Origin: Epithemia pelagica
Taxonomy: Eukaryota; Protista; Bacillariophyta
Assembly (NCBI GenBank): GCA_946965045.2
Contig: OX337228.1
Span: 6,262,001 to 6,326,000 of the forward strand
DNA length: 64,000 bases
Reading direction: 5' to 3'
The notes below the pieces were generated by a model. The model saw only the letters and a list, made by a program, of their open reading frames with translations, did not search any database and had not been told where the DNA came from. How positions within the stretch are numbered: position 1 is the stretch's first letter; every line of letters starts with the position of its first letter. The translations under genes were made by a program, and so were the position numbers. This document shows, piece by piece, positions 44,775 to 53,882 of this stretch.

Positions 44775-46362
44775 TTACTTGGATGTGGATGGATCGGCTG
44801 CATTCGCCACTTCCTCTATTATGGGAAGAGCATTGAGGCACCAATTTTCATGCCATCTCAGTCGATTCTCCAACTTTTGGGAGTACTCGTGGAGTTTGCC
44901 AAACGAGTGACACGGCATGGGTTGATCGTGCTGAAGCGGCCGGAGTAACTCAAACAGTTGATCCGCGAGTTGTGCACTCGTGGTAAACACATGACCATTC
45001 ACGTCCTCTTGCACCAGTTCGGACAAACAGGCAAAGTCCATGGCACAAACTGGTACTTGACATCCAAACAAGTCCAGGACTTTCATGGGTAGGTCTAATC
45101 CTGAAGTGGATGTGTGCAAGGAAACACCGACATCGGCACAGGCCAAAAATGTTGGATAATCTCGAGGTTCCAACCAAATGGTGGAAACCGCAAGATGATG
45201 CAGCGTAAGCTTGGAAATTTGGACCTCATAGTCTGCTTTTTCAGGGCCTTTTCCCGTCACAACTACCACGGCACGTAGGTTGATGCCTTCACTTTCGATT
45301 TTCGCGTCCAACAACAACAAGGCCGCAAGAAGTATACCAAAATCCTCATCGGGCGTCCAGGAAGTTGAACTTGTAATCAGTGCTGGCCGACCTAGTCTCG
45401 GACTGTACCTACCGTTCTCGTAGACTGTTAGCAGGGTCTGATTGCTTTGAATGCCGTATTTGGGCCATGATTTGGGGCATGCTTTTTCAAGTTGAGGGTG
45501 GATCTTTTGGAGGAGTGCATGTTGCTCTGCCAGACTCCGAGGTTGGAACATGTGAGGAGGGCAATCTGGAAGAACCCGAACCTTTTCAGCGGCAAGTTTG
45601 AGATCGGAATCGAGAAAGCTTTTCATGGCATTTGTGACAGTCAAATGCGCATCTGCTCGAGGAGCAACGAGTTTTTCATAAACCTGTGCAATCTTTCGCG
45701 TTGGCCCACCGGCAAGCATGGAGTACCCCCTATCGACAGCATCATAAGTCTCTAAGAATGAAGCAAACAAGGCATGGACCACCATGTCGTCGTCTTACTT
45801 ACAGATTGTGCCAATCAATGACGAGGCCTGGTCCTTTTCGTTTACGAAATACAAATAGCCCAATTACCCAGCAATAGACTCTTGCAACGAGAAGAAGCGG
45901 GAGCGCGGGTGGATTTTGTACCAACACACAATGTGGGGCTTTGAGCCTCCTATATGGAATCCGTGCCACCAACACCCAAATCAACCATACTGCCAAGCTG
46001 ACGATTCTCCATACAAAATAGACGAATCGAATCTTTTGAAGAAAGCTCGGCGAGGGTACGGAAAATCGAACGACATTCAGGATGCCAGTCGGCGTGTCCT
46101 CCGTTTGCTCTTCCGAATCGTTCAATGATGGGTCGTCCTTGGTGAGCTTGGCCGTCTCGGTTTCAGGCTCTTGGTGGTGGTTGCCCAGATAGGACACCAA
46201 ATCGGGGATCAGGTCCTCGCCTGTATATCCAACCAAGGAAACAATATGACCACACTGCAGCAACGATAGCGCGTGATACTGCATTCGAGGCGATCGGCCA
46301 AGATCACCGAGAACGATTACCACCACATGGAGTTGCCGATGGTCCGACTTTAGGATTGCCAT
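44775..46362 (-). CDS. ALG1: Chitobiosyldiphosphodolichol beta-mannosyltransferase
   Basis: Exon 46362-45804, intron 45803-45730, exon 45729-44775. VLGDLGRSPRMQYHA, QNPP, IDWHNL-GYS, SSTSWTPDEDF, HTSTSGLDLPMKVLDLFG. Confidence 0.96.
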
Positions 46363-46462
46363 TGTCAATAATTGTGAGAGTCAAGAGTGGGTGGATCGTG
46401 TCATCGCCGATTGAACAATGTCTTGCCGTCGTCCGTTGATCCTTCCGAATTCCGAATCTCCA

Positions 46463-46834
46463 GCCCTGTTGGAGCGCTTTTACGATGTCCAAAAGGGTTG
46501 TATTCGGCTGGATGGACGAGATGTACGGGACCTGAATTTGAAAACACTCCATCGTCAAATTGGCCTAGTCCAACAGGAACCCACCTTGTTTGGCTTGTCG
46601 GTCCGAGACAATATCACTCATGGTGTACATCTCCACGCCGTGGCAGCTCCCACGGACGACCAAATTTGGGAGGCTTGTCGCAAAGCGAATGCGGCAGACT
46701 TTATCGCCAACTTTCCTCAAGGACTGGACGAATTGATTGGCGAACGGGGAACCAAACTGAGTGGAGGTCAGAAACAGCGGATTGCCATTGCCCGCGCCAT
46801 TCTCTTGAATCCAGCCGTTTTGTTATTGGACGAC
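46463..46834 (+). pseudogene. Isolated ABCB/MDR nucleotide-binding-domain fragment
   Basis: ALLERFYD, Q-loop GLVQQEP, signature LSGGQKQRIAIARA and Walker B VLLLD(D). No Walker A, D-loop, H-loop or TMD on either side. Confidence 0.85.
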
Positions 46835-46944
46835 GGTATCGTTTCCTCTTCTTGCAGACTTCGTTCCATCGTCCTCTGGGACCATTGGACTATAGCTATA
46901 GCCATCCAATGCCTTGTCGGGTCCACTGGTGGTGGTGGTGATTA

Positions 46945-47191
46945 AAAATTGGCTCCCCACGGTATTTTGGAGACCATTGAGTTCCACAGCCACCACACGT
47001 CCCGTTTCGCGACATTCTGCTTCGGTCAATCGACGACCCGAAGACGATGCTAAAAACCTCTTTTCGTTATTTTGCAACAATGATTCGTTACGAGACACTG
47101 TAATGACGAATCCTTCTTGTTTGTGGTCATGGCGGTCAACAAACCATCTAAAAGCTTGTCGCTCCATCTCCCGTGCCTGTGGGATGACAAC
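46945..47191 (+). repeat. Dispersed repeat copy A (about 245 bp)
   Basis: Aligns by eye to 53001-53243 with about a dozen substitutions or small indels. Confidence 0.95.
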
Positions 47192-48037
47192 CAACCGACT
47201 TGGATGGACAAAGTGCGGCCCACGGGAGGAAAATTTACCTCCTTCGACGACCAAGGAATCGATTGACTTGGATGTGCACCAATACAAGCATCCAATCTAA
47301 CGAAGGGTGAATCAACGCCTCCAGAATCCCTGGACGTTACAGAGCAAGAATCACAACGAGCGGAGGACGACGCAACACCTGCTGCAACGACACTAGAATC
47401 GACCACTGTGAAAGCTCCAAACGAGGAATTACAGAGAACCGAGGACGATGCGCCGCCTCCGTCGACGACGATAGAATTATCTGACACAACTGCAGAAAGC
47501 AAGGAATTGCACAGAATAGGGGACGACGATGCAACTCCTCTCCCGTCCACGACAATGGAATCTTCTCACTTGGATACCGAGAACGCGCAACCTCCCCCCA
47601 CTGTTGACGGTATAACACCACCATCAACAGCAATAGCATCTACCGACTTGGATGTGCAGCAGGAGGAATCAAAACGGATAGAGAATCATTCAACACCTCC
47701 ACTGACTGCAATAGAATCTTCCAACTTGCATACACAACAGGATGAATCGCAACCAACAGAGGATTAAACAACACCCCTATCGACAGCAACAGAATCTACT
47801 GGTTTGGATCTGCAAAAGGAGGAATCCCCGATTGACGAAAATGACGCACCGCCCATCGCAACTGCATTAGACGAACTAGGATCATCCTCACTCCAGAGCC
47901 CTCCAAAAGCCAAGAGTGTCCCATCGTCTTTACCTTTTGCTCGCTCATGGATCCCACTACTAGTTCGACAATGGACTGTATCGACTTTTTACAGCAACAT
48001 CAATCGACGTTGGAAACACAATTATGGTCAGTACTGA
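46950..48037 (+). pseudogene. Disrupted ORF: R/S/T-rich presequence-like start followed by degenerate 26-aa acidic repeats
   Basis: Frame change near 47285 and in-frame TAA at 47765-47767. 78-nt periodic units start at 47627, 47705 and 47783 (TAIxSTxLDxQxEES...TPP), with more degenerate units upstream. Confidence 0.6.
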
Positions 48038-48408
48038 TGGGTCATGACGCCTCCTCATTATCCTCGTCGTCCACTGGAACTTGTCACATGTCGTGGTGGA
48101 CCGCAATGGATTCCAAAGATGCAGTGGCACAGGACAATGGTACCGACCACACTGTCACAGAGAGGACAACGACAACGACCACAACAAGAAGTAGGGGAAC
48201 GCACACAAAGGATGCTGCTGCCGTGGTTCACCTTTGTATTGAACTGACCAGCCCTGTTCCTAATCGTCCGTTCCATCAACGTGATGGTTATCAAGTCCAG
48301 TGCTATCCCATTTCCTTCAGTATCCCAAACAATAAGCGAACCATAACCCTTTTCATCGATTGGAGCAAGAATCTTTGGTTGAAGAGGGGCCCTGTTTTGT
48401 TTACTTAA
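47947..48408 (+). other. Unassigned 153-codon ORF, possibly another gene fragment
   Basis: Open frame with protein-like composition that overlaps the end of the previous relic. No family recognised. Confidence 0.25.
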
Positions 48409-48518
48409 AGGGGAAGAATTTGCGGTTTGGATCGCCTCCTCCAGTTCCACCGTCAGGACTCCATCAAACATCCTCCAAGTTGTCTCAACAACGGCTCAGA
48501 AGAGTAGAAGAAACCAAG

Positions 48519-49379
48519 ATGAGTGACTACGACGACGGCTTCCATGGCGATGACGACGACCAAGATCCTCCTCCATTCATGTGATTGGTCACGAACATCC
48601 CTTGTTGCCACCGCTCTTACCATCCACGACGGTGGCTGCGGCTCGTACCAAGACTGTCCAACGAAGCAAGAGCAAGTCCTCGTCGTGGGTGTTGTCCTCG
48701 TCGTACTCCTCCACTGCATCCACCTGTTCGATGGATTCCGCCTCGATTGGCGAACGTGTCTCGCAACGCAAACGACGCTCCAGTTTTTCGACAGAAAGCA
48801 ACCACAACAACAACCAGGAAGACGACGAATCGCCCCTCCATCACTTTCATGGCTTGTGCGAGGACTATCACCGTGTCTTGGACAAGACGGCGGTGGAATA
48901 TTACGATGTCATAATTCCCAATGTCCTCCATCAAGCCCAATTGTATGTTCGGCATACCACCTTTCCACCGCCTCCCTGTCGACAACGCAGCAGCAGTACT
49001 GCCTTTGGACGGTCCCAGGAACCCCCTCTCTTATTGGCCGAACCACACGAGGACGCACAACGGAAGCAGCCGAATTTTTGCCTACACCACCTTTTGCGAA
49101 GCGCCGGGTCAGATCAATCCCAGTCAAGCTTGTCGCGTCTTTCGCAACCCTGGCGACATTGTCGTGGCCGTCAATGGCATTGCCACTGCGGACAAGTCTT
49201 TTGACGAAACGTGCCACTTGATCCAAGAACAATCGTACATGTTTTTGCGCATGGTTGATCTACAATGGTACCGGCAACGACGCCACCAACAACAAGCCCT
49301 ACGAGCCCAAGAACAACAAACCAAAAAGGCCCGTGGTAGAAGGAACCTGCACGAAGAGCAGGAGGATTCCTGGTGGTAG
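48519..49379 (+). pseudogene. Frame-disrupted PDZ-like domain gene
   Basis: Three successive frames (48519-48584, 48581-, 48921-49379). The C-terminal part NPGDIVVAVNGIATADKSFDETCHLI resembles a PDZ domain. The second shift could be an intron (48943-49018); the first cannot. Confidence 0.55.
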
Positions 49380-49581
49380 GCCCCCATGAAGGACTATCAG
49401 CAAAAGCCCACCAAGAACAAGCAGCAGCAGGAGGCTGACAAAATTGTCGTTATGCGGTGGATTCGAGCATCGATTCCATGGTCACGAAGCGAAGCGTGCC
49501 CGAATGGAGAAAAACACAGAACAACGTATGCCCAATCAGTAACGTGCAGGAGGCTTGGCCAAGGGCACCACTTCTCGCTCT

Positions 49582-49899
49582 ATGAAATCAAATATCCAAT
49601 CGAGAAAGGCTGGTAAGGCCGGTGGAAACATGGATCGTGACAATGTTTCGAGCGTCAACATACCTGGCGTCCCGGTAGACTTGCAGGCGACCAAAAAGAG
49701 TGGACCGATATCATCCATGAAGCGTGGCAAGGATTCCACTGTTTCTGCTCTCTTGGCCACTCCACGATCAACAGCATCCATGGGGCGATTTGACAAAATG
49801 AGAGAGGATGAACCAGAGCGCAAAAAGATGTTAAGAAAACAAAATACGAGAGTGCAACTGGAAAGAAGCTTTCGCAGAATGAACGAGAACGAAGTATGA
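49582..49899 (+). CDS. Small basic hypothetical protein or gene remnant
   Basis: 105-codon ORF from ATG 49582. No family recognised. Confidence 0.3.
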   Translation: MKSNIQSRKAGKAGGNMDRDNVSSVNIPGVPVDLQATKKSGPISSMKRGKDSTVSALLATPRSTASMGRFDKMREDEPERKKMLRKQNTRVQLERSFRRMNENEV

Positions 49900-50215
49900 A
49901 GGTGCTAAAGAGCGTAGTTGAGGGTGGTGGTGTTGAAAAAGGGAGAAAGATAAGAAAGGGACAGTATGCCAAGGGAGAAACGGCTCTCGACTACGAATAT
50001 GATGATGGACTTGGACCATCAAGTTTCCGGAAAAAAAGGGTCGCGCTGGTGTAGGGAAGGCAAGAAAGCTCACAAAGAAGCACATGAAGTAGCTTCAGCC
50101 ACTTCAACAGCAATTACCATTCATCCTCTCTGATTGTCAACTACTCCTAGGAATCGCTAGTCAGCAATGTTGTCGTGCATGTTCAAATGTTCCACTTGCT
50201 ATTGTTACCACTACA

Positions 50216-50641
50216 TGTTATATAGAAACATTTTAGCCGAAAAGCTAATCCCCTTGTTATTGATCAACCCAACACTTAAATACAGCAGGTAGGGAAGCGG
50301 AGGAATCAATGGATTCTCCAGGGGCAACTATGGCACTCTTCCCCAATGGCACAGAGACCGAAGTCTCCATGCCATACCTGATGACACAAGGACAAAGTCC
50401 TCGTGCCACCAGGGTTTTGTGATAACACAGAGACCGAAGTCTCCATGCCATACCTGGTGACACAAGGACAAAGTCCTCGTGCCACCAGGGTTTTGTGAAA
50501 ATTAGGAAGCCCGGAGGAATCAATGGATTCTCCAGGGGCAACTATGGCACTCTTCCAAGATGGCACAGAGACCGAAGTCTCCATGCCATACCTGGTGACA
50601 CAAGGACAAAGTCCTCGTGCCACCAGGGTTTTGTGATAACA
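50216..50641 (-). mobile_element. LTR-like element with TG...CA termini and internally duplicated 5' part
   Basis: 6-bp inverted termini TGTTAT (50216) and ATAACA (50636-50641). 130-bp units at 50298-50427 and 50512-50641 plus a 73-bp partial at 50426-50498. TATA-like GTATTTAAG on the minus strand at 50275-50283. No TSD. Confidence 0.5.
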
Positions 50642-50774
50642 CCGACAACCAACACACCGACAACCAACACACCAACACACCAACACACCAACACACCAAC
50701 ACACCAACAAACCAACAAACCAACAAACCAACAAACCAACAAACCAACAAACCAACAAACCAACAAACCAACAA
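50641..50774 (+). repeat. Compound microsatellite (ACCGACAACCAACAC)2(ACCAACAC)4(ACCAACAA)9
   Basis: Counted directly from the sequence. Confidence 0.97.
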
Positions 50775-50952
50775 GGACATATCCGACAGGGACTCTAGCT
50801 AGACTCAGCTGATGTAGGAGTAGGAGTAGAATTTTGCAATCGCTAGAAACAGAAGAAGGGGTAGAGTGAGAGTATGGAAAGATTCATAACCGACACGAAC
50901 GTGCGCACGTACCACTGGCAACCGACAACCGACATGTTATTTTTCTGTTTTT

Positions 50953-51768
50953 CTATTTTTTACCCGTACCCGCTGACAAAAGACGAGCGGATCGTCGAAC
51001 GTGCACCATTCCGTGTGCCTTTTTGGAGTAGGCAACAGTAAGGATTCTGCCCAAACGTGGGGTGTTCTCGAGGCCGGCGGAACTCTCGATCACGCTTTGG
51101 GGGGCATTCTCATCCATCTGAGGCGAGGTATCTTTTTCAGTGGGGGTGGGGGCGGGGGAAAGAGGGGTGGAATTTCGAGGGGGTGAGACGTGCCCCAGAG
51201 TGTTCTCGTCGTCGTTGTCGGGGATGAGCGCGGGTTCAGGCTCAGGACGGTCGACTGGAACTAGAGGGGTCTCCTCGTCGTCCTCGAGATCCTCTGCGAG
51301 TGCGAGAGGAGGGAAGTCCAAGTCAGCGTCGAACTCGCAAGGCAGAACAGCAACAGTGTCGACGTCGACCTCCTCCTCGCGATCGCAAAACTCCTCGTGA
51401 CGACGAGTCTCGCGTTGCTTCGCAGCAAGCTTTGCTTCGGCAACAGCAAGCTGTTGTTGAAGCTGAGTCTTTTCGCGTTGAAGCTTTCGCGCAGACCGCA
51501 CTTTCCTCACTCGAAGCGCCGCATTCTCGCGACGAAGCTTCTTGTAGGCTCCATCCTTCGCTGCAATTTCTTTTTGTTGCTTACGGATTGTTGCTCGGCG
51601 TTTCTTGTCAAGCTGTTCCGACCCAATCACCGACTCATGCAAGACGTAAGCGAAGCCGAAAAGCACCATTATCACCACAAAAGGAGCACAGAACTCAGCC
51701 CATTTCATCAGCTCCAAATGGAGCATGAGTAAGTTCGACAATATTTCGTAGATATCACACATCATCAT
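50953..51768 (-). CDS. Hypothetical N-terminal TM + coiled-coil + acidic/Pro linker protein ending in VRRSARLLSA
   Basis: Intact 271-codon ORF from ATG 51768. TM APFVVIMVLFGFAYVL, basic coiled coil, acidic linker, C-terminal LGRI...VRRSARLLSAGTGKK. Confidence 0.75.
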   Translation of the reverse strand: MMMCDIYEILSNLLMLHLELMKWAEFCAPFVVIMVLFGFAYVLHESVIGSEQLDKKRRATIRKQQKEIAAKDGAYKKLRRENAALRVRKVRSARKLQREKTQLQQQLAVAEAKLAAKQRETRRHEEFCDREEEVDVDTVAVLPCEFDADLDFPPLALAEDLEDDEETPLVPVDRPEPEPALIPDNDDENTLGHVSPPRNSTPLSPAPTPTEKDTSPQMDENAPQSVIESSAGLENTPRLGRILTVAYSKKAHGMVHVRRSARLLSAGTGKK

Positions 51769-51946
51769 GGTCAATCGTATTTCGTTCGTATTTTGTTTTT
51801 GTGCGTGTTGGATTGTTGCGTGTTGTTGTTGTTGGCGTTTCGTGTTGATTGGCGATCGGACCCTGGAGGTGCGAGGCAGCGGGGCCGGTTTAGAGCAGCA
51901 CAGCAATCAACCGTCCGGGCAATGTTGCAGGTACCTCTGCGGCGCA

Positions 51947-52384
51947 ATGGTCGGCAGCACTCAAGCGGTCGAAGAGGACACGGCCAACCAAGACGACGAC
52001 GACAAGAACAAGAGCAAGTCGATGACGACGACGACACAACAACAACAAAACGAAGAAGAAGACTATGACAACGAGGATGAAGAACACGAACCCTACTTTA
52101 ATACCAACGAAAAGCCGTTGCTGCGACGATTGCCCAAACGATTGCGCCACAAAATGTTGCCCTTTTTCGATCCAGAGTTCAAATCTGGATCGCCCTTCTT
52201 GTTTGCATTTTCCGTCGTGTTGGAGGCAGGAGCGGCAGTCTCGTGTTTGGTGTTCAAGGATGGCTTGCCATTTCTCGTGGGTGTTGCCTCTGGGCTCCAG
52301 TCATCATCGACAACACTCTCCTTGAAGGATTGGCAGAGCCTCTTGGATATTGATGCGGAACCCATGTCGTGTGTTTTAATTTGA
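51947..52384 (+). other. Unassigned ORF, probable gene fragment
   Basis: Acidic low-complexity stretch followed by a globular-looking segment (EPYFNTNEKPLLRRLP...). No family recognised. Confidence 0.25.
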
Positions 52385-53000
52385 AAGGGTCCAGTCCATC
52401 CCAGCAACACCCGCCAGAACAACCACGACGATGACCACAACAAGAACGACGCATCCTTGGAACGGCAACGACTCGAATGCAAAAAATAATGACATTGTCG
52501 CAATGGTTAGTTCTGTTTCAATTGCTTATTGCTCTTCTATGGAGTTCGAACAGTCCATTCTTCGTACAGGACCACGACAAGAGAGCAACAACAACAACTA
52601 CAACAAGGGGAGGGGAGATACACACATGTGCGCAAGTCGTCGCAAGAGGACATACAGTTGTGGAATTGGCCTTTTCGTGTTTCTCTCATTCCTGAAACTC
52701 TCATTGTTGTACTCGTACCACAAACAACAACACAAGCACAAGAACCACAAACACCATGTTTTCGGCCAATGAAAATTTGCAATTGCGGCAACACAAGCGC
52801 CACATTGTCAACAAGGTAGAATCGTGCATGCCAATCGAGATTGTCGAGGAAGGGTTGGTCAATGGCATGGTGATGCAAGTCACGTGTCGTTTCTTGCTGT
52901 GTTTCTTTCAGTGCGCCCAATTCTTGGTTCCGCATGTTATTCTCCACAGGTTCTTATGATTGTGCCTCACACATATGGATGGACGTATGTTCTCATTTTG

Positions 53001-53243
53001 AAAATTGACTCCCCACGGTATTTTGGAGACCATAGAGTTCCACAGTCACCACACGTCCCGTTTCGCGACATTCTGCTTCGGTCAATCGACCACCCGAAGA
53101 CGATGCCAAAAACCTGTTTGTTATTTTGCAACAATTATTCGTTACGAGACACTGATGACGAATCCTTCTTGTTTGTGGTCACGGCGGTCAAAAAACCATC
53201 TAATAGCTTGTCCCTCCATCTCCCGTGCCTGTGGGATGACAAC
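53001..53243 (+). repeat. Dispersed repeat copy B (about 245 bp)
   Basis: Direct repeat of 46945-47191, 6 kb downstream. Confidence 0.95.
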
Positions 53244-53299
53244 GACCAGAATTCTCCCAAGAACCAAATGGTGGAAACCCAGCAATGCCTGGAACGATT

Positions 53300-53882
53300 G
53301 CAACGCCGTTGCTGGTGAAACGGAACAATTGATGGACATGCCAGAAACTCAAGCATTTACTGCGGTTCTCGTTGCCCTGGCTTCGGTCGGAGCTCCCTGA
53401 TGCTGCGGAAAAGGCGCACAGAGGTTTGCGACATATGATGGACCTTGCTTTGTTGGGAAGATTTAAATGCTTTCCTAACCGTTATTCTTTTGCGGTTGCG
53501 TTCTGCCTGTGCCAAGTCCCCGTCACAAGCTGCAGGGAAAAGAGCTCTAAAGTTGCTGGAGGAGCTAAAGAGTGTCTCTCGCGAGAATAGCGATCCGTCA
53601 TTTGTCCCTGATCTCTTCATTAATGTTGATGTAGTGGTTACGTGTTTCCGGTCGATGAATATTAAGGATGGAGAGGACGCGATTCGGACTCTGTTTGAAG
53701 AGCTCCTATCGAAAGAGGCTTCCTTGTGGCAAAGCGGAGACCGTGATGATGCTGGACAAAACTCTGGCTTGTTGCGCAGATTACGTCGTGAGTTCGAATC
53801 GAGTCATTTCAAATACGACGAGTTGCTCTCGTTGCAGCTGGAGCAAGTCGAATCCATTGGGAAAGATGCTATGCGTCGATGA
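53300..53882 (+). pseudogene. Pentatricopeptide-repeat (PPR) pseudogene fragment
   Basis: PETQAFTAVLVALAS-GAP/DAAEKA..LRHMMDL..PNRYSFAV/SACAKS..AAGKRALKLLEEL..PDLF. There is a +1 frameshift at about 53395 and a second shift at about 53500. Confidence 0.75.

Follow-up and report, generated by a model that had tools for sequence, protein, structure and literature searches.

Within a 64,000-nucleotide stretch of the genome of the diatom Epithemia pelagica (contig OX337228.1, positions 6,262,001 to 6,326,000 of the forward strand; here called the window) lies an open reading frame (ORF) whose predicted product begins with a hydrophobic helix and closes on a basic tail containing RRSARL, a hexapeptide shared with the nucleosome-binding core of HMGN proteins. 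A first-pass annotation read this ORF as a membrane-to-chromatin tether, possibly transposon borne, that might anchor element DNA or chromatin at the nuclear envelope. The locus therefore raises the question of whether the ORF encodes such a tether or whether its history points elsewhere. We conclude that the ORF is probably one copy of a young, species-restricted, multicopy orphan gene unit in an Epithemia-related pennate diatom, and that the units, spread over many contigs, would turn over by duplication, ectopic gene conversion, and decay. Nucleosome binding by the tail is biochemically plausible, and a chromatin-tethering role is plausible but unproven. A conserved cellular function acting on the whole protein is not visible in the sequences compared.

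The ORF belongs to a dispersed family. A word-index search recovered 50 distinct protein sequences behind 22 cluster representatives, located on at least 15 contigs. Every locus fetched came from the European Nucleotide Archive (ENA) assembly ERZ21939226, on which the copy counts rest; the window ORF and four neighboring ORFs have no exact counterpart in the protein collection, so the assembly of the window is either missing from it or carries different gene models. There are about 25 or more dispersed loci, with flanking genes that differ from locus to locus; two of them, L001 and L003, resemble alleles or haplotigs of one another. When 1.84 billion representatives were searched with a profile (E value of ≤0.001), only four clusters were returned, and no relatives elsewhere. 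All four are listed under ENA only, and the two that were traced to contigs are both in ERZ21939226. Since the same collection includes proteins of the two nearest relatives, Epithemia clementina and ERZ25042306, the family is, judged from these searches, confined to one species or a very narrow lineage. For an ALG1-like glycosyltransferase encoded in the window (44778-45785, minus strand), identity is 100% to an ERZ21939226 protein, 81% to E. clementina, 79% to ERZ25042306, 70% to Entomoneis paludosa, and ≤58% to other named diatoms (Fistulifera, Cylindrotheca, and Bacillariaceae).

What is repeated is larger than the ORF. The unit spans ~1.5 to 2 kb and comprises ~300 bp of conserved upstream DNA, an intronless ORF of 250 to 320 codons, and a repeat-rich conserved 3′ flank. 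Homology between loci runs from ~290 to 335 bp upstream of the ATG to ~430 to 900 bp beyond the stop codon; in the window, the core extends from 52045 to 50530, and homology to some copies reaches 50031. The noncoding parts of the unit are 85 to 97% identical between loci; conservation is similar in the 3′ half of the ORF, mostly 87 to 97%. The part encoding the N terminus and coil is far more diverged (60 to 77%) and occurs as at least two cassette types.

One locus allows the history of the window copy to be followed directly. L009 of ERZ21939226 is orthologous or allelic to the window region, with 94 to 98% identity across 20 kb. Upstream of the unit, from ~52080 outwards, L009 and the window are 98 to 100% identical; inside the unit, identity falls to 45 to 65% over the N-terminal and coil region and is 77 to 98% over the C-terminal half. 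L009 encodes the other N-terminal cassette type, which starts with MMMCDCDYCYEKMISSEW; the two cassettes show ~33% synonymous divergence, and both are open and hydrophobic. The window ORF is itself a mosaic, with an N terminus like that of L001 and L003 and a C-terminal half 96% identical to that of L008. Because divergence is confined to the unit and the ORF is mosaic, family members must overwrite each other faster than their flanks gain point mutations. These comparisons indicate that the copies exchange sequence by ectopic conversion (cassette swapping).

No purifying selection on the amino acid sequence was detectable anywhere in the family, in which changes accumulate at the mutation rate. 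Nei-Gojobori ratios of nonsynonymous to synonymous differences per site (pN/pS) were 1.20 for codons 126 to 268, 0.94 for codons 1 to 50, and 0.66 for the poorly alignable coil. An event-based count over 10 DNA copies gave 111 unique variants in codons 126 to 268, split 43/31/37 over the three codon positions; 27 were synonymous and 84 nonsynonymous, compared with a random expectation of 28% synonymous (p = 0.40). At the N terminus, within cassette type B, there were 4 synonymous and 11 nonsynonymous changes. Copies also decay. Individual members carry a frameshift (P0014), an N-terminal truncation (P0010), or a lost stop codon with read-through (P0001), and two older tandem copies at L011:6001-7503 (ERZ21939226 ctg1360l) show only 37 to 49% protein identity to intact members; an in-frame stop interrupts one of these, and the motif region is found in neither. 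The turnover of the family is a birth-and-death pattern. The lack of purifying selection, the absence of relatives from other diatoms, and the decay of older copies together argue against a conserved cellular tether.

The protein itself resembles the one first described. The ORF is intact and lies on the minus strand, with ATG at 51768, TAG at 50953-50955, and a length of 271 codons before the stop. It had been called the only clearly intact sizeable ORF in its island; it is indeed the longest between ~46.4 and 56 kb, but several ORFs of 180 to 230 amino acids occur there too. Its higher GC content was borne out (0.547 at 51001-52000, compared with 0.467 in each adjacent kilobase), and the ATAACA reported 13 nucleotides after the stop is present, beginning at the 13th base and thus separated from the stop by 12 bases. 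Hydropathy, charge, and AlphaFold2 uphold, at the level of sequence, the proposed layout of N-terminal transmembrane segment, basic coiled coil, acidic and proline-rich spacer, and motif-bearing tail (Table 1). With the family alignment as input, AlphaFold2 predicted residues 3 to 128 as a single helix of 126 residues, with mean confidence (predicted local distance difference test [pLDDT]) above 90 in 10-residue blocks over residues 11 to 120. Nearly all of residues 131 to 271 had a pLDDT below 50, with block means of 32 to 48 from residue 131 onwards.

The putative transmembrane segment is assigned by hydropathy only; each of four paralogues scored, drawn from both cassette types and a third form, has a comparable hydrophobic stretch (19-residue means of 1.84 to 2.45). 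The helix is flanked by a net charge of −3 on its N-terminal side and by strongly basic sequence beyond ~10 residues on its C-terminal side, a balance that weakly favors exposure of the C-terminal part to the cytosol or nucleoplasm. The most acidic part of the linker, residues 126 to 190, has a net charge of −23 and contains 9 prolines, and the basic tail of the window ORF ends in VHVRRSARLLSAGTGKK before the stop codon. Unlike the window copy, 12 of the 22 cluster representatives read on for ~35 to 45 residues, mostly lysine rich and encoded by an A-rich tract; in the alignment, this extension follows SAGTG and runs from KNPKNPEKAKKSKKPRKSKK to ITCRLSVASGTCAQSCRL and a stop. Compared with these long forms, the window copy has a deletion of ~100 nucleotides at this point and a stop inside the A-rich tract, and its downstream frame still reads KITCRLSVAS. 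The description of the motif as terminal thus holds approximately for the window copy and not for these 12 representatives. A Pfam scan of the protein gave only weak subthreshold matches, several of them to coiled-coil families, and Pfam and PDB sequence searches with the whole protein returned only subthreshold noise, chiefly coiled-coil or membrane families. Rfam and tRNA scans produced nothing above threshold. An imperfect echo of the motif, VRSARKL (residues 90 to 96; 51481-51501, minus strand), occurs inside the basic helix; its alanine is replaced by glycine or valine in paralogues, so it is not conserved.

VRRSARLLSA is encoded exactly where it had been placed, at 50971-51000, and within it RRSARL occupies 50980-50997 (R258, R259, S260, A261, R262, and L263). 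The claimed match to the HMGN core survives for the hexapeptide, which is exact; the octapeptide RRSARLSA is matched at six of eight residues and is broken by one extra leucine, the sequence being RRSARLLSA. The premise that this core binds the acidic patch of H2A-H2B is supported by cryo-electron microscopy, which places RRSAR of HMGN2 and RRSSR of Dsup on the patch with R26 and R367, respectively, as anchors (PMC12487698). Yeast Dot5 binds nucleosomes through R6, R7, and R10 of its RRSARIAT motif, and LANA is cited as another acidic-patch binder (PMC13347269). R258 to L263 conform to the Dsup/Dot5 class pattern R-R-S-x-R-[L/I] with its three essential arginines. The segment is also of an accessible type, with block mean pLDDT values of 32 to 37 over residues 201 to 271 and no secondary structure.

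Loss of the motif among homologues had been named as grounds for abandoning the tether, and no such loss was found: the motif is present in 21 of 21 relatives that reach the region. This is weak evidence, because the relatives are all recent paralogues from one genome, 5 to 7% diverged in the C-terminal half, with motif codons identical at the DNA level. The invariant stretch in these 21 sequences is 11 residues long (VHVRRSARLLS), a run length matched in 2.3% of column shuffles (0.023). By chance, RRSARL would be expected ~0.004 times in one window's real genes, ~0.09 times across all six-frame sequence examined (an estimate from per-residue probability), and ~1 time per proteome of 5 million residues. 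Its occurrence by chance is unlikely in the window alone and not so in a whole-genome scan for any famous motif; local (CGA)n and (GAC)n tracts, moreover, raise the background frequency of RR.

Beyond the hexapeptide, resemblance to HMGN proteins was not recovered. The whole window protein and six isolated tails, long forms included, gave no Pfam match to HMG14_17 (PF01101) at an E value of ≤10; this family was also absent from the best 25 of 30 Pfam families in a scan of all 23 members, and a PDB search with the long-form tail returned no HMGN match. In a BLASTP comparison with the HMGN2 F3 peptide (PMC3298710), only RRSARL aligned, and the lysine- and proline-rich parts did not. The likenesses are the exact RRSARL, its disordered basic context, the presence of an acidic region, and, in the long-form paralogues, a lysine-rich stretch after the motif. 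However, the acidic region is C terminal to the motif in HMGNs and N terminal to it here; HMGNs are small soluble nuclear proteins, whereas a membrane helix and a long coiled helix are predicted for the diatom protein; and HMGNs are vertebrate only and conserved, whereas this family is found in one genome and evolves neutrally. On these sequence comparisons, membership in the HMGN family fails.

Dsup (RRSSRLTS) and Dot5 (RRSARIAT) offer another parallel, since in each a short R-R-S-x-R-[LI] motif with all three arginines sits in an unrelated, lineage-restricted protein, and by sequence the diatom RRSARLLS is at least as near the HMGN consensus as either. Both of those proteins are soluble and nuclear, and their binding has been demonstrated, in contrast to a protein that is membrane anchored by prediction and known from sequence alone; the diatom gene is, in addition, multicopy and unconstrained. 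Likeness to the N terminus of LANA from Kaposi's sarcoma-associated herpesvirus is conceptual, in that a short arginine peptide binds the acidic patch and thereby links a cargo to chromatin, with no sequence relationship; LANA holds its viral episome by means of a distinct DNA-binding domain, which has no equivalent in the diatom protein. The CENP-C motif is an arginine-anchor tether of the same concept, again unrelated in sequence, and it needs downstream aromatic residues that the diatom tail lacks.

Among membrane tethers, LBR, LEM-domain proteins, and the plant NEAPs cross the membrane once or a few times and touch chromatin through a nucleoplasmic region that is basic or coiled, and the size of the diatom protein, ~30 kDa, would permit diffusion to the inner nuclear membrane and retention there. 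Those proteins are, however, encoded by conserved single- or low-copy genes and bind chromatin by folded domains or arginine/serine-rich regions, not by an HMGN-like motif, and Pfam and PDB searches with the whole protein found no homology to any of them. In behavior, the family resembles birth-and-death orphan families, with which it shares confinement to one genome, residence in repeat-rich islands, mosaic paralogues, unit-limited conversion, a ratio of nonsynonymous to synonymous change of about 1, and decayed copies. That label describes behavior and is silent on function.

If these pieces act together, the product would be a single-pass membrane protein in which an N-terminal hydrophobic helix leads into a basic helix of ~85 residues, followed by ~145 disordered residues that form an acidic, proline-rich linker and a basic tail. 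Should it be expressed and reach the inner nuclear membrane, R258, R259, and R262 would be expected to engage the acidic patch of H2A-H2B in the way that the arginines of RRSAR in HMGN2 and RRSSR in Dsup do and that mutagenesis implies for Dot5, and so provide a contact between membrane and chromatin. Expression, topology, localization, and nucleosome binding of the product are things that we infer. Modeling with AlphaFold 3 and a nucleosome, which had been proposed as a check, is a weak test, because such models are reported to be of low confidence and wrongly oriented even for HMGN2 (PMC12487698).

Several observations sit uneasily with a young unit drifting at the mutation rate. Despite many indels, ~50 sequences hold open a frame of 250 to 320 codons, and there were 0 stops where ~2.8 were expected (P of about 0.06, in a test that is biased because the sample consists of copies called as proteins). 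Something may therefore maintain the reading frame. A query with the C-terminal half, aimed at orphaned fragments, found none and returned only one full-length member. The 32-nucleotide block that encodes the motif is the most conserved piece of the unit (the next invariant run is 19 nucleotides), and by hand calculation, with 0.26 variants per site, such a run has a chance probability of ~7e-5 per start position and ~0.03 over the C-terminal half. A conserved short motif in a freely varying disordered linker is also what a functional linear motif would be expected to look like.

The same heptapeptide, RRSARLL, recurs in an unrelated ORF of 236 amino acids at L001:11790-12500 (minus strand; allele at L003:11799-12509, minus strand), in the contexts GHRRSARLLQQQ and AAVHPNDGHRRSARLLQQQQQQ. 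This ORF converges on the family copy, the two stop codons lying ~1 kb apart, and its seven motif codons differ from those of the family at four positions, all synonymous and none nonsynonymous. Its order of RRSARLL, acidic stretch, and KRQRRKRR cluster, with a C-terminal end of KVKRQRRKRRVALV, is reminiscent of HMGNs. A single intact locus of this second ORF is known, its L008 paralogue has a 13-nucleotide deletion precisely at the motif, and no relatives turned up when JGI metagenomes were scanned with the second-family protein. Neither the invariance of the motif block nor the recurrence of the heptapeptide is predicted by a purely neutral picture, and the short motif itself may thus be under selection. 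Within the family, the motif codons show no synonymous variation, so that constraint on the protein is inseparable there from constraint on the DNA or from chance.

How these points are to be weighed depends on the alternative considered. That the family consists of true inner nuclear membrane proteins tethering chromatin, as originally supposed, is a reading that we judge unlikely. The architecture fits, with a membrane helix followed by ~85 residues of rigid helix, ~110 residues of flexible linker, and the basic tail; the closeness of RRSARL to the HMGN consensus, its position in a disordered region, where linear motifs usually lie, and its place as the most invariant 32 nucleotides of the unit all favor this, as do the lysine-rich tail of 12 of the 22 representatives, which could bind DNA, and the second ORF of L001 and L003, with RRSARLL, an acidic stretch, and KRQRRKRR and synonymous-only codon differences. 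Set against it are the missing purifying selection on the transmembrane helix, coil, and linker, the absence of the family from related diatoms, and the decay of old copies. The lysine-rich tail has been lost from the window copy and about half of the family, the motif codons offer no synonymous variation, with a hand-estimated chance of ~0.03 over all start positions, the second-ORF paralogue has lost the motif, and similarity to HMGN2 is limited to six residues with no HMG14_17 match. The tether interpretation thus stands as regards architecture, exact hexapeptide, and multicopy unit in repeat islands, and evolution argues against its being a conserved one. A stronger version, in which RRSARLL is a selected acidic-patch motif of this lineage, we consider less likely still; it would place the motif both in a membrane-anchored, rapidly recombining family, there serving to attach chromatin or the repeat islands to the nuclear envelope, and in a soluble neighboring ORF of HMGN-like layout. 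The opposite view, that the ORF is incidental to a noncoding dispersed repeat of GC-rich, stop-poor composition and that RRSARL is a chance match, would account for variants spread flatly over codon positions at the randomly expected synonymous fraction, for flanks as conserved as the ORF, for the lack of relatives and Pfam domains, for long overlapping antisense ORFs (e.g., 51300-51728, plus strand, 142 amino acids), and for a local RR frequency raised by common (GAC)n/(CGA)n tracts. It explains poorly why 50 distinct sequences keep the frame with all indels in the called proteins in frame, why N-terminal cassettes of two very different kinds have each kept an open frame and a hydrophobic character, why none of the 50 ends before the motif (one frameshifted copy excepted), or why AlphaFold2 confidently predicts a helix of 126 residues, and we regard it as very improbable.

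The suggestion that the gene is transposon borne, with the unit being, or traveling on, a transposable element and the ORF being element encoded or a passenger, was not supported, and we think it unlikely. Dispersal to about 25 or more loci among unrelated flanking genes and a fairly consistent 5′ limit of homology speak for mobility, and the islands do hold mobile DNA, such as a 3.26-kb insertion at L009 and a copia-type reverse transcriptase near decayed copies. However, neither the ORF nor neighboring ORFs of the unit contain a Pfam domain of a transposase, integrase, or reverse transcriptase, no terminal inverted repeats were found (inverted matches around the unit are low-complexity (GAC)n only), and no direct repeat lies at the ends of the ~2-kb unit, the sole long direct repeat bracketing ~6 kb. 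The 3′ limit varies between pairs of copies, some pairs share much longer segments that resemble segmental duplications, and at L009, the single orthologous locus, the unit is present in both genomes, so that its content differs and not its presence. The only duplication seen was the ATCTT of the separate L009 insertion, the unit junctions not having been searched for target-site duplications. Another possibility is a fast-diversifying, lineage-specific membrane family with some other role, at the cell surface, in secretion, or facing an endosymbiont, in which variation is favored and is generated by gene conversion and RRSARLL is a sorting, cleavage, or kinase site. It would be suited by pN/pS values of 1 or more, by the many intact copies, and by an exchange of cassettes that stops at the unit while the DNA upstream is nearly identical; the closest named relatives, Epithemia diatoms, carry nitrogen-fixing endosymbionts (PMC11383321), which would fit as well. 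The nonsynonymous excess is nevertheless not significant relative to random mutation (p = 0.40), and there is no cleavable signal peptide, the N-terminal flank being acidic and 13 to 34 residues long in the copies scored. To our knowledge, moreover, no known sorting or cleavage motif fits RRSARLL better than the HMGN core does, and we find this last alternative highly unlikely. Readings of the tail as a di-lysine (KKXX) or arginine-based endoplasmic reticulum retention signal, a CaaX box, or a kinase site were rejected, as the spacing does not fit.

A young orphan unit is of interest in itself, since it shows cleanly how a very young gene family can spread and be reshuffled by ectopic conversion while no constraint is visible at the protein level, and it bears on the origin of orphan genes and of short functional motifs. 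Validated cases of the motif have so far come from vertebrate HMGNs, tardigrade Dsup, and yeast Dot5. If RRSARLL is a selected acidic-patch motif here, it would be the first HMGN-like motif outside opisthokonts and the first on a membrane anchor, and if the tail binds, membrane-chromatin tethering would be a new use of it. If the motif is coincidental, this is an ordinary lineage-specific, repeat-borne ORF.

The features of the unit and its surroundings are collected in Table 1. The window neighborhood is gene dense, with MCM, valyl-tRNA synthetase, Pus10, glycosyltransferase, and TPR genes, and the copies of the multicopy unit sit in repeat and pseudogene islands. In the 3′ flank, a microsatellite, (AACCAACA)n, is present as (AACCAACA)16 at 50647-50774, and the array at 50298-50652 consists of 141-nucleotide units containing 76-nucleotide tandem repeats, with copy numbers that differ between family loci. 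An Rfam search with the 76-nucleotide repeats gave one subthreshold microRNA-like match (29.5 bits, compared with a gathering score of 101). On either side of the window ORF, around ~6 kb of mixed content, stand the 260-bp direct repeats; they were rejected as long terminal repeats because the right copy carries a scrap of the second ORF family and the pair encloses this mixed content rather than the unit. Scraps of the second family occur in the window at 49387-49448, 50031-50143, and 53238-53307.

Table 1. Features of the repeated unit and its surroundings (window coordinates)
Feature	Position	Strand	Basis or remarks
Intact ORF of 271 codons, ending in TAG; belongs to the dispersed family	50953..51768	−	22 cluster representatives, 51 to 84% identity
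Putative signal anchor: hydrophobic helix, residues 26 to 44, FCAPFVVIMVLFGFAYVLH	51637..51693	−	Kyte-Doolittle 19-residue mean of 2.19; inside AlphaFold2 helix 3-128
Basic amphipathic helix, residues 45 to 125, net charge +15, probable coiled coil	51394..51636	−	Composition, AlphaFold2
Disordered acidic/proline-rich linker, residues 126 to 235, net charge about −27	51064..51393	−	pLDDT, composition; substitutions as in random mutation
Basic motif-carrying tail, residues 236 to 271, net charge +9	50956..51063	−	Composition; no Pfam HMG14_17 match at E ≤ 10
32-nucleotide block encoding VHVRRSARLL(S)	50975..51006	−	Longest fully invariant DNA run in the ~1.9-kb alignable unit, 9 copies
Conserved upstream region, probably promoter and 5′ untranslated region; holds the 5′ homology limit	51769..52062	−	85 to 94% identity just upstream of ATG
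Conserved 3′ flank, with microsatellite and part of 141-nucleotide repeat array	50530..50952	−	Interlocus comparison
Extended 3′ flank, common to L001, L003, L008, and L007 only	50031..50529	−	Interlocus comparison
Left copy of 260-bp direct repeat, ~93% identical, ~6.05 kb (start to start) before right copy	46942..47201	+	Self-comparison
Right copy of the same direct repeat; overlaps N-terminal remnant of second ORF family (53238-53307)	52998..53253	+	Self-comparison
Decayed, frameshifted remnant of second ORF family, from MKDYQQKP to FRKKRVALV and stop, without RRSARL	49387..50054	+	Sequence comparison

Other features of the islands were observed alongside. A divergent ORF of 205 amino acids (51767-52384, plus strand) overlaps the conserved upstream region and is shared between loci only up to ~52062; as sharing is limited to the conserved region, this points to a bidirectional promoter region common to the loci and not to a second gene that is conserved. 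At 46418-46945 (plus strand), the decayed remains of an ABC-transporter ATP-binding domain stop where the left 260-bp repeat starts. A 1.68-kb segment at 47494-49177 is present in the window and absent from L009, with TGC microhomology at the junction, and L004 and L005 contain parts of it in different surroundings. The copia-type reverse transcriptase lies ~5 kb upstream of the older tandem copies on ctg1360l. The 3.26-kb insertion (L009:3293-6552) begins 70 bp past the family stop, corresponds to an empty site at ~50883 of the window, and is flanked by the 5-bp duplication ATCTT. Its 786-amino-acid ORF, which has no Pfam match, is found on three contigs at ≥90% identity, and the insertion looks like an unclassified mobile element.

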